Assembly (NCBI GenBank): GCA_950097015.1
Contig: CATNEN010000008.1
Location: 4,526,001-4,590,000, forward strand
Direction of reading: 5' to 3'
DNA length: 64,000 bases
From: Macrostomum hystrix
Taxonomy: Eukaryota; Animalia; Platyhelminthes
In this document: one piece after another, positions 61,095-64,000 of the stretch
Numbering within the stretch: the first letter of the stretch is position 1
Layout of the letters: each line of letters starts with the position of its first letter
Made by a program: the position numbers and the translations under genes
Notes under the pieces: generated by a model
What the model was told of the DNA's origin: nothing
The model's input: the letters and a program-made list of their open reading frames with translations, nothing else
Database searches by the model: none

Positions 61095-61440
61095 AGGCAG
61101 GAGAGAGGAGGGGAGAGGGGAGAGGACAGAAGCAGGGGAGAAGAGATGGAAGAATTGAGGGAGAGAGAGTGAGAAGAAAAACAGGGGAAATTAGAGGGAA
61201 GGTCAGAAGGGAAAGAGAGGGAAGGCGAGGGGAGACGGGAGGGGAGAGACGGGAGGGGAGAGGGGAGGAGAGAGAGGAGGAGTGAGGGGAGGAGAGACAG
61301 GAGGAGAGAGGGGAGGAGAGAGGGTAGTAGAGAGGGGAGAAGAGAGGGGAGAAGAGAGGGGAGAAGAGAGGAAAGGAGAGGAGAGTAGAGAGGCGAGAAG
61401 AGAAGAGAGGAGAGAAGAGAGAGGGGAGAAGAGAGATAGA
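61095..61440. repeat. GA-rich low-complexity tract
   Basis: Direct reading. Confidence 0.85.
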
Positions 61441-61879
61441 ATAGGAGTTGTGTTAGTCACGGAAGAGTCATAAATCAGAACCTATACAAGGCTACAACAT
61501 GAGCAATCATCAGAGAAGTTGTCGGCATTCAGTCTCTTTCGCATTGAAGACACTGAGGTCAGGAAAATCGCGAGAGTGAAATTTGACACACAATTGAAAA
61601 GCCTATGTATGCTAGGGGAGGATAGGCGAGATAAGCGATCGATTTGAAAGACACATTCGCGATATGGGCCGGCTTAATTAGGACGTCACGTGTACTCCCT
61701 CCGGGGGTGGGGGGGGGTAACAGAAACTCGGGGACACGTCAAGGAGGGTCAATAGGCGATACGAATGCTGCTGCATGCACTATTAGCGACTGGGAAAACT
61801 AAATTGGGGACTATAAGGAACATTGACGAAGGCAGGGATAAAATCCCAGGGTGGGGCAAGCGCGAAAGTGAGGAAGAAG

Positions 61880-62285
61880 AGAAAGAGAGGGGCAGGTAGT
61901 GGGTGAGAAGGAGAGGGGCAGGTAGTGGGTGAGAAGGAAAGGGGCAGGTAGTGGGTGAGAAGGAGAGGGGCAGGTAGTGGGTGAGAAGCAGAGGGGCAGG
62001 TAGTGGGTGAGAAGGAGAGGGGCAGGTAGTGGGTGAGAAAGAGAGGGGCAGATAGTGGGTGAGAAAGAGTGGGGGAGATAGTGGGTGAGAAAGAGTAGGG
62101 GAGATAGTGGGTGAGAAAGAGAGGGGCAGTTAGTGGGTGAGAAAGAGAGGGGAAGATAGTGGGTGAGAAAGAGAGGGGCAGGTAGTGGGTGAGAAAGAGA
62201 GGGGCAGATAGTGGGTGAGAAAGAGAGGGGCAGATAGTGGGTGAGAAATAGAGGGGAAGATAGTGGGTGAGAAAGAGAGGGGAGT
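61880..62285. repeat. 26-bp minisatellite GAGAGGGGCAGGTAGTGGGTGAGAA(A/G)
   Basis: Direct reading. Confidence 0.94.
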
Positions 62286-62694
62286 TGAGAGTTGAGAGTT
62301 GCCGGCACAGATCTAATCTGATCTGATCAAATGAGGCTGTGTTGTCATCATCAGCGGCTGAGGCAGCACAATTTGATGGAATCCAAATCAAATTAGTTGG
62401 CATTTTGTGAACTTTTCAATGTCGTCAAGACGAAATCTAATTTTTTTATCAAAGAAAAATTTCTTCTGAACTTAATTTGGGTCCCTAAAAATCAAGGACA
62501 TCATGAAATATATACTAAGGCTTGACTGAGTAAAAGCTACTGTAACTGAAGCCACATTTTCAAGAATGCGTATTGAGACAAAATGGAGAATTTATTTACT
62601 TTTGCCAGCAAAAATATTCCAACAGAAAGGGAGATAGAGGAAAATGAAGGGGGTAGAAGACGATTGGAAGTACGATATGGGAAACGAAGGAGGG

Positions 62695-62850
62695 GAGATG
62701 AACGAGGGAGAGAAAGTAGGGGAAATGACGTAGGGGAGATGACGGAGGGGAAATGACGTAGGGGAGATGACGGAGGGGAGATGACGGAGGGGAAATGACG
62801 TAGGGGAGATGACGGAGGGGAAATTACGGAGGAGAGATCACGGAGGGGGA
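62695..62850. repeat. 15-bp repeat GGGGGAGATGACGGA
   Basis: Direct reading. Confidence 0.85.
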
Positions 62851-62915
62851 GATCAGATTAAAAAAAACTTAAAATAGATCGACAGCTTGATCAGAAGGAA
62901 GACAGCAAGCAACAT

Positions 62916-63094
<179 letters not shown>

Positions 63095-63096
<2 letters not shown>

Positions 63097-64000
63097 GGGA
63101 CAAAAGTGCACCGTTCACGCCGGGTCCCTGAACACCTGGAGCAAGCTCCAGGGGACAAATTGCTCTACCACCCAGACAAGCTTCCGCAACAACCACCGGA
63201 CACTTCCATTACAATCACCTGCCGAGGGGGACGAACTACACCTCGTGCTGCGCCTCCGCGGTGGCGAGGCGCCCCAAGCCAGCCGCAACGGCATCAAAGC
63301 CTGCTCCACGGAGTTGGCCGCGTGGCTCCACCGTCACAAACCAGCAGCGGGTCTCCTGCAGGAAACCAAGCTCAAGCCGGGGCAAACCTACCACCCACCG
63401 GAAGGGTACTGCGTCGCCGCACGTTGCGATGGACTACCCAAGCCGGACCTGCCCCAGCCACCTACTACACCGGACCAATCACTACCGTCAGACCAGCCAA
63501 GCAGCATTGCCCCAGAAGCCGTGCACAGGCGCCAGCAAACCCGCCCACGGTGCCGCCTTCCGTGGCCGGACGGCAGGGCAACTGAGTGGTGTGCAGGCTG
63601 CCGCTCAGGCCGCTCGGCCTGCAACCGCCGCAACAAGCCGTGGCCGACCACGCGGCCCACACCGGTGTCACAGCAGCAGCCCGAACGCCAAACCGCCACC
63701 CGCCGCAACACACAACCAGGCGCAAGTGCGGGGAGGTGGGCACCCTCGTTCTGATCCGCTGCGACATCCCGTGCCAAGAGACACCAAAACCGGACGATAG
63801 CTCCCGCGGCCACCTCGACATTGCTACGACCATAATCTCGCCTAGAAAGGACCACGACATCATGCTCTCGTCGGTCTACGCACCACCAACCAGTGCCCAA
63901 CGCCAGGACAACTGGCAACCGCCACTCCACCTAATCCCGCAACACCACCGTTCGGTAATCAGAGGGGACTTTAACGGGCACGGAACCTGGAACGCAGACG
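63095..64000 (+). mobile_element. 5' part of a non-LTR retrotransposon ORF: ubiquitin-like tail plus APE/EEP endonuclease, one frameshift; continues beyond the window
   Basis: NGIK..EL..WL...LLQETKL...GY..ARCD in one frame; GTLVLIR, LSSVYAPP (63865-63888) and IRGDFNGHGTW (63958-63990) in the -1 frame. Confidence 0.8.

Follow-up and report, generated by a model that had tools for sequence, protein, structure and literature searches.

A ubiquitin-tail motif at the position of a 2A peptide in LINE retrotransposons of macrostomid flatworms

Non-LTR retrotransposons of the APE type (LINEs) that encode a single ORF are known to carry a viral-type 2A peptide near the N-terminus of their protein, as is the case for L1Tc/Ingi and for elements of the CR1, L2, Rex1, and Crack clades (PMC3708506, PMC3894237). 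Located 40–80 residues from the N-terminus in these LINEs, the 2A splits off a short leader and so leaves the enzyme as a separate product (PMC3708506, PMC3894237). An N-terminal separation module is therefore an already known kind of device in single-ORF LINEs, but the reason for its presence is still debated. Site-specific LINEs additionally rely on host expression of their target, as exemplified by R1 and R2 in rDNA and by the microsatellite-specific elements of the R1 clade.

Proteins are also released from precursors by way of ubiquitin. In polyubiquitin and in ubiquitin–ribosomal protein fusions, a full 76-residue β-grasp domain, which deubiquitinases (DUBs) need, ends in ...LRLRGG, is followed by a residue other than proline, and precedes a protein to be released. 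Ubiquitin insertions in the polyproteins of cytopathic pestiviruses create a processing site that is cut by the host. The tail can also serve as a processing site without the ubiquitin fold: the LXGG sites of coronavirus PLpro and of the marafivirus endopeptidase (PMC8348309) are bare ubiquitin-tail-like peptides within a polyprotein, and both enzymes are papain-like proteases with a second function as deubiquitinases. DUBs, for their part, hydrolyze tail-only LRGG peptides very poorly, since the ubiquitin globule is bound as well (PMC7477763).

Here, we analyze a stretch of 64,000 nucleotides from Macrostomum hystrix, referred to as the window (G000:C8:4526001-4590000), together with the 220-Mb, 42-contig assembly (G000) to which it belongs. 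The window ends within a defective LINE, in which the first-pass annotation had recognized the C-terminus of ubiquitin ahead of the endonuclease (EN) and had proposed that a ubiquitin-like domain had been captured. We find instead a lineage of LINEs in which a 2A appears to have been swapped for a seven-residue copy of the ubiquitin tail that is under strict selection. The ORFs of these elements are open to the 5' end, two families are without a usable AUG, and all 13 insertions with a CAG-type flank lie in the glutamine frame. These last three features are newly described here. In the library searched, neither LRLRGG nor a ubiquitin tail is connected with retrotransposons, and the papers of Odon and Ryan on LINE 2As do not mention ubiquitin.

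Table 1. Features at the LINE insertion in the window, and the ubiquitin-tail motif by family.
Feature	Position in window	Strand	Basis or remark
(CAG)60 microsatellite	62916..63095	+	TRF; upstream flank and target of the LINE insertion
Family-A LINE, defective, 5' part	63096..64000	+	5' end set by copy comparison
Conserved 5' nucleotide block, GTTCACGCCGGGTCCCTGAAC	63113..63133	+	Aligned 5' ends inspected
RTL tripeptide at ubiquitin spacing	63197..63205	+	Family A only
Ubiquitin-tail mimic (putative), 10 residues	63236..63265	+	Conserved core VLRLRGG at 63245-63265; Glu next, not Pro
Linker remnant EAPQASR	63266..63286	+	Copy comparison
Endonuclease N-terminal half (NGIK...LQETKL) and long low-complexity insert	63287..63738	+	Translation, copy comparison
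Second endonuclease half (GTLVLIRCDIP...GDFNGHGTWNAD), other frame	63739..64000	+	Translation versus L017
Motif, family A			Ten residues with core VLRLRGG
Motif, family B			LIQVLRLRGG
Motif, family C			LHQVLRLRGG
Motif, family D			LNLVMRLRGG
Motif, family E			IHEVLRLRGG
Motif, family F			LQLVMRLRGG
Motif, P0001 (outside this genome)			LLSVMRLRGG
Motif, Macrostomum lignano PAA56246.1 and cluster members (P0024/P0175)			NLHRVLRLRGG

The elements are APE-type non-LTR retrotransposons, with EN followed by reverse transcriptase (RT) within one ORF. The order along this ORF is leader, VLRLRGG, Arg-rich linker, APE endonuclease, RT, RNase H, and CCHC. The family-A copy L017, used here for comparison, has an open ORF of 1465 codons with a C-terminal CCHC. 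Pfam recognizes Exo_endo_phos (1.8e-12), Exo_endo_phos_2 (7e-14), RVT_1 (1.5e-31), and RNase_H (4.6e-10) in this ORF, and detects neither the ubiquitin family PF00240 nor any protease domain there. L017 is bounded at both sides by a 10-bp target-site duplication (CAACAACCCT), ends in a (GAAA)n tail, and lies within a CAG-rich minisatellite. Our guess is that the lineage belongs to the Ingi/I-group, which would fit the domain order EN-RT-RNaseH-CCHC, the single ORF, and the 2A-bearing relatives. All comparisons are between individual copies.

The copy in the window starts directly next to the (CAG)60 tract and extends ~1.9 kb beyond the window end, where its (GAA)n tail is followed by CAGCAGCAGCAGC, repeated in the 3' flank. 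Retranslation confirmed the frame on which the first-pass annotation had built, in which 63197-63265 reads on into the NGIK...LQETKL stretch (63287-63373), as well as the start of the listed ORF at GTG 63245. The gap of seven codons counted between GG and NGIK is true of this copy but is particular to those that carry a 90-nt deletion just after GG, namely the window copy and its duplicate on contig C7. The deletion, at 63286/63287, took out the Arg-rich stretch and EN strand β1 (LRVLQFNC); less damaged copies read GG-EAPQASRRRPRRRRPHCRQRPSDGEEPGHL-LRVLQFNCNGIK, with 37 codons from GG to NGIK. Further damage consists of a frameshift near 63731-63739 within EN, after which the frame ends at a TGA, and, beyond the window, of a deletion that relative to L017 has removed ~1.47 kb, including the end of EN and the greater part of RT. 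What remains encodes a broken EN, the end of RT, and RNase H. There is no ATG, the sole upstream Met of L017 being replaced by Gly. The window copy is thus a dead, rearranged family member, unable to express anything. The locus is duplicated on contig C7 together with the same dead LINE (L014, C8:4588500- versus L015, C7:126800-), the 5' part of the LINE being 100% identical, deletion included, and the flanks ~96% identical; this second copy is either a segmental duplication or a retained homeologous or allelic region. On the 5' side of the CAG repeat, the window is densely occupied by minisatellites rich in purines, the units of which repeat every 12, 14, or 26 nt (61097-62853).

When the first 400 residues were used as a protein query against the genome, the families A–F of Table 1 were identified, between which EN identity is 45–51%. 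The pattern [DE][EN][LI]xxV[LM]RLRGG is found ~25–37 residues ahead of EN strand β1 in at least six families and in Macrostomum lignano copies, and the heptapeptide VLRLRGG equals residues 70–76 of ubiquitin exactly. The aligned sequences show no variation at V, R, L, R, G, and G, just as they show none at the catalytic residues of EN. Pairwise identity reaches 92% in the seven columns of the motif, compared to 20% in the upstream leader, 33% in the downstream linker, and 59% in the N-terminus of EN. The residue that follows GG varies across families (E, N, H, D, A, or D) and is never proline. The genome contains 49 matches to a degenerate DNA pattern of the motif (9 in the control), made up of 23 at host ubiquitin loci, ~24 LINE copies, and 1–2 unassigned matches, so that each motif family comprises few copies. 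A single LINE copy has LHNVMRFRGG (G000:C10:2130735-2130763, minus strand), with Phe at the equivalent of Leu73; it is the sole deviation from RLRGG outside obviously decayed copies. In an exhaustive profile search of 1.84 billion representative proteins, one further representative with the ubiquitin tail was found, corresponding to the M. lignano cluster, and a word search with the N-terminal 150 residues of family B returned no match. In current databases, the motif lineage is confined to Macrostomum-type flatworms. A LINE-like protein of the leech Helobdella robusta (P0083, XP_009024514.1) begins MALEQWLLRGGNDRS..., ~60 residues before its endonuclease, which may be an independent LRGG-type 2A remnant or an artefact of the gene model.

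The codons of the motif differ synonymously among copies. One of the Arg positions uses all six codons (CGC/CGT/CGA/CGG/AGG/AGA), the Gly codons vary among GGT/GGA/GGC/GGG, and sub-families of D and E show 4–5 synonymous and 0 non-synonymous differences. Taken at the level of sequence, this comparison shows that purifying selection acts on the motif as a peptide in this LINE lineage, and synonymous turnover with fixed residues leaves no room for a signal in RNA or DNA, nor for a one-off chimera. The latter had been put forward in the first-pass annotation, for the event that other copies lack LRLRGG; families A–F have all kept V[LM]RLRGG. A signal at the nucleotide level, whether a promoter, an RNA structure, or a Kozak-like start region, or else mere chance likeness, could be suspected because family D has an ATG inside its motif (VMRLRGG) where families A, B, and E have CTG, and because a separate block near the 5' end is conserved as nucleotides. 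However, family C has CTC at this L/M position, the conservation reaches upstream to [DE][EN][LI]xxV, and every codon of the motif turns over while its amino acid is fixed. With these codon data, a non-peptide reading counts as already refuted, and the probability that we would still assign to it is negligible.

The exact match to ubiquitin could also reflect a captured fragment of a ubiquitin gene, or a ubiquitin-like domain acquired through an mRNA or pseudogene chimera, the upstream part of which has since degenerated. The host genome does contain ordinary polyubiquitin genes, family A matches ubiquitin in 10 of 10 tail residues and has the RTL tripeptide at the right spacing, and 24–25 of 30 nt are shared with host polyubiquitin. 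The domain itself, however, is absent. A search of the whole genome with PF00240 recovered 51 host loci and 0 LINE copies, the ubiquitin profile being silent upstream of GG in every copy, and none of the families gives a β-grasp signal. When residues 1–430 of family A were modeled with AlphaFold2, the EN core was predicted with confidence, whereas residues 1–66, comprising leader, motif, and linker, had pLDDT values <50. In family B, only ~33 residues separate the 5' end of the element from the motif. At the DNA level, likeness to host polyubiquitin is limited to the 27–30 nt that code for the shared residues, where the match is forced by the identical amino acids, and upstream of the motif the comparison with four host polyubiquitin loci stays at the random level at any offset. 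A frameshifted ubiquitin homology in the upstream region was also considered and discarded, as offsets of -6 to +6 and local alignment against the same four loci gave nothing above random. The RTL tripeptide is present in family A, as the first-pass annotation had noted, but absent from the other families, which have only xxV[LM]RLRGG in common; the ten residues between RTL and the tail match ubiquitin in 0 of 10 positions, and RTL is most likely a coincidence. The motif can moreover be accounted for without capture by the 2A alignment and the tree described below. We regard capture as largely refuted already, and as a very improbable origin. The idea that LHLVLRL is simply the β1 strand of EN was rejected as well, given that β1 of intact copies is found in its own place, as LRVLQFNCNG located 30 residues farther downstream, and that the motif is not packed onto EN in the AlphaFold2 model.

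A different origin is indicated by the nearest relatives that lack the motif (P0028, P0030, P0033, P0003, and P0040), all of which have ...LLLLRAGD(V/I)ExNPGP at the aligned position. In P0028, P0030, P0033, and P0034/36, a canonical 2A is followed by an Arg-rich linker and then by EN, for example, PAYLALLILRAGDVEENPGP...RRRR...LMQFNCNG, and in P0003 and P0040 a PHD-like finger stands between 2A and EN. MAFFT places VLRLRGG|D/E/N over the N-terminal half of the 2A, LLLLRAG|D, which bears out the earlier remark that the motif sits where related LINEs have 2A peptides. LLLLRAG needs just three changes, of L to V, of another L to R, and of A to G, to become residues 70–76 of ubiquitin. The sequence 3' of GG is variable in the copies with the ubiquitin tail and its NPGP half has decayed: family B retains N-P at the NP position of the 2A, and an NPGP-type motif is found neither in the copies compared nor in the window. 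In an unrooted tree of EN-RT-RNaseH, computed by a quick method after removal of the N-terminal columns, the six ubiquitin-tail sequences form one clade (SH-aLRT 100) that is sister to a 2A-bearing clade (SH-aLRT 90), 2As being scattered across the rest of the tree, so that a single change separates the two states. Because the tree is unrooted and was obtained by a quick method, the polarity from 2A to ubiquitin tail rests on parsimony. The 2A sequences compared come from other organisms; 2A-bearing LINEs are common in this genome, as judged from many matches to the 2A pattern just 5' of more distant LINE ENs (31 matches to D(V/I)ExNPGP as DNA in G000, and 0 in the control). The presence of a 2A at the aligned position in the relatives and the placement of the ubiquitin-tail clade beside 2A elements point to derivation from a 2A rather than to capture, and the motif probably arose through a small number of point substitutions, with decay of the NPGP half going on alongside, which is the better of the two accounts of its origin.

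Such a history raises the possibility that what the motif inherited from the 2A is a variant form of translational recoding or pausing, exerted in the ribosome tunnel without NPGP, and that its likeness to ubiquitin is incidental. It is homologous in position to the tunnel-binding half of the 2A and is placed like the 2As of other LINEs, 40–80 residues from the N-terminus (PMC3708506). Yet StopGo cannot do without the D(V/I)ExNPGP half, which is decayed here, and GG is not followed by proline. Furthermore, all three changes from LLLLRAG hit the residues of ubiquitin and then froze, which tunnel function does not predict and which speaks for genuine mimicry of ubiquitin's tail. We therefore consider recoding improbable. 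As D(V/I)ExNPGP is gone, any separation brought about by the motif would be due to post-translational proteolysis and not to ribosomal skipping.

The question of what might need to be separated leads to the leader and to the sequence in front of it. Over 249 leader codons, the ORF frame contains 0 stops, compared to 8 and 7 in the remaining frames, and the ORFs of these LINEs are open to the 5' end of the element. No usable in-frame AUG precedes EN in families B (L036, L039, L040, L044, L052, and L056) and D (L012, L013, and L053): the first Met of family B lies inside EN, past the catalytic Asn, and the sole pre-EN Met of family D is the one within VMRLRGG. An AUG supplied by spliced-leader trans-splicing was considered and provisionally set aside, since the copies lack a leader-like sequence at their start, and since the only AG near the 5' end of family B would give the wrong frame.

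These LINEs favor CAG/CAA-type repeats as insertion sites, and wherever such a repeat lies upstream (13 of 13 insertions), it is in the frame that reads glutamine with respect to the LINE ORF. The insertions (window 62916-63096, L003, L004, L009, L012, L035, L037, L038, L040, L052, L053, L056, and L063) represent families A–D as well as M. lignano, and thus two species. The spacers between repeat and element measure 1, 4, 7, or 10 nt and are unrelated in sequence, and the mechanics of integration, as understood here, give no explanation for the glutamine phase. In the window, the (CAG)60 tract reads as polyQ in the frame of the LINE ORF, and this frame is closed by a TAG at the 5' edge of the repeat. 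In M. lignano, a LINE with the ubiquitin tail continues the frame of a host ORF for a C2H2 zinc-finger protein rich in polyQ (L063:1068-2645, NIVC01002647.1), and the fusion is annotated as a single protein, PAA56246.1. The zinc-finger paralog P0174 (L066:5001-5972, NIVC01000019.1) is uninterrupted and runs on into a further zinc finger, although the site with the insertion lacks 533 bp of the target.

Together, the glutamine-frame flanks, the open leaders, the absent AUGs, and the M. lignano fusion suggest that translation may enter the elements from upstream, and they point to a mode of expression in which the LINEs ride host frames. Such elements would integrate at polyQ repeats and continue the glutamine frame with an AUG-less ORF, with translation beginning at a host AUG farther upstream or, through repeat-associated non-AUG initiation, within the CAG tract itself, and the ubiquitin-tail mimic (the 2A in relatives) would shed the N-terminus that the host sequence or the polyQ repeat encodes. 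We advance this full scenario tentatively, and consider it rather unlikely to hold in all its parts. A preference for a repeated target is shared with R1/R2 and the microsatellite-specific LINEs, the target here being CAG/CAA; the open ORF and the families without a start codon come in addition. The suggested dependence differs from that of R1/R2-type LINEs in that it would concern translation in frame with a polyQ-coding repeat, which to our knowledge has not previously been described for a LINE. Open leaders and the lack of an AUG speak for the removal of an upstream part and for the need of a separation device.

A selected motif at the position of a 2A, with a GG that never precedes proline, would most economically be read as a site of separation or processing. 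The motif belongs to an N-terminal module that macrostomid flatworms have in one lineage of APE-type LINEs with a single ORF and an RNase H. This module consists of a short disordered leader, V[LM]RLRGG, ~10 variable residues, and an Arg-rich stretch, followed by the endonuclease. The proposal that we favor, to which we give about an even chance, is that V[LM]RLRGG is a 2A-derived mimic of the ubiquitin tail that took over the separating job of the 2A. Post-translational cleavage after GG, by a protease with which the host processes its ubiquitin precursors, would then free the Arg-rich-EN-RT-RNaseH protein from whatever had been translated upstream. The shed part would be either the element's own leader or, when translation enters from outside, sequence encoded by the flank, such as polyQ.

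Several features of the described systems recur in this arrangement. As in 2A-bearing LINEs, the motif stands between a short leader and a linker or PHD finger ahead of EN, in single-ORF elements without an ORF1; it is positionally homologous to the canonical 2A of the sister clade, from which it differs by the lack of D(V/I)ExNPGP and by conservation of the upstream half instead, changed to VLRLRGG. With ubiquitin fusion precursors, it has in common the ...LRLRGG ending, a non-proline residue next to it, a downstream protein to release, and the proposed logic of a host protease. It differs from them in having 7–10 tail residues within a disordered leader in place of the complete domain, and in its probable derivation from a source other than a ubiquitin gene. 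In its bareness, it resembles the viral LXGG sites. These are cut by proteases that the viruses encode themselves, whereas Pfam finds none in the LINE ORF, so a host enzyme would be required. The case for DUBs is weakened by their need for the body of ubiquitin, which is absent here (PMC7477763). On balance, cleavage after GG by a host protease appears plausible, with the arguments about evenly poised. The exposure of an N-degron after GG was considered as a further role and rejected: 13 of the 20 residues qualify as destabilizing, and five of six is therefore not significant.

Alternatively, the tail may remain uncleaved and act as a docking mimic that binds a reader of ubiquitin tails, for example by recruiting or occupying a DUB against degradation, or by engaging other factors of the ubiquitin system. 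The strong selection on the peptide and its exact match to ubiquitin 70–76 would be expected of such a ligand, as would the disorder of the region, which is typical of short linear motifs, and tail-only peptides do occupy DUB clefts while being poorly hydrolyzed (PMC7477763). On the other hand, the motif replaced a 2A, the sole known job of which is to separate two products (PMC3708506), ORFs that are open to the 5' end and lack an AUG demand removal of the upstream part, and no partner is known. Docking is in our judgment unlikely, if worth keeping in view.

If host enzymes do cut the tail, as in the separation model, these LINEs would be the first retrotransposons known to use the machinery that processes ubiquitin precursors, and the motif would be a natural DUB site that functions without the ubiquitin fold. 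It would also amount to a genetically encoded linker of very small size that the host cleaves, possibly useful in flatworm transgenesis, for which a method is available in Macrostomum (PMC5730564). If the tail is not cut, it would represent a viral-style mimic of the ubiquitin tail with another target. Open ORFs, absent start codons, and in-frame CAG flanks offer a possible reason for the existence of any separation module in such LINEs.

Two further conserved features accompany the motif. A block of ~20 nt (GTTCACGCCGGGTCCCTGAAC in the window; GTYCACGMSGNGYCCCYGRA) is conserved near the 5' ends of families A–E. Since family C reads this block in another frame, it probably serves as a promoter or as an RNA element of the 5' end rather than as a peptide. 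Within EN, an insert of ~100 low-complexity residues, which AlphaFold2 predicts with low confidence, contains a conserved Cys4 motif of the form C-x11-C-x2-C-x6-C (CRLPWPDGRATEWCAGCRSGRSAC, 63551-63622; CRLRWP...WCxGCRSGRxAC). Besides family A, the insert occurs in families B–D, P0001, and P0003 (L036, L037, and L059 included), and its Cys4 motif may be a zinc knuckle for recognition of the target DNA.
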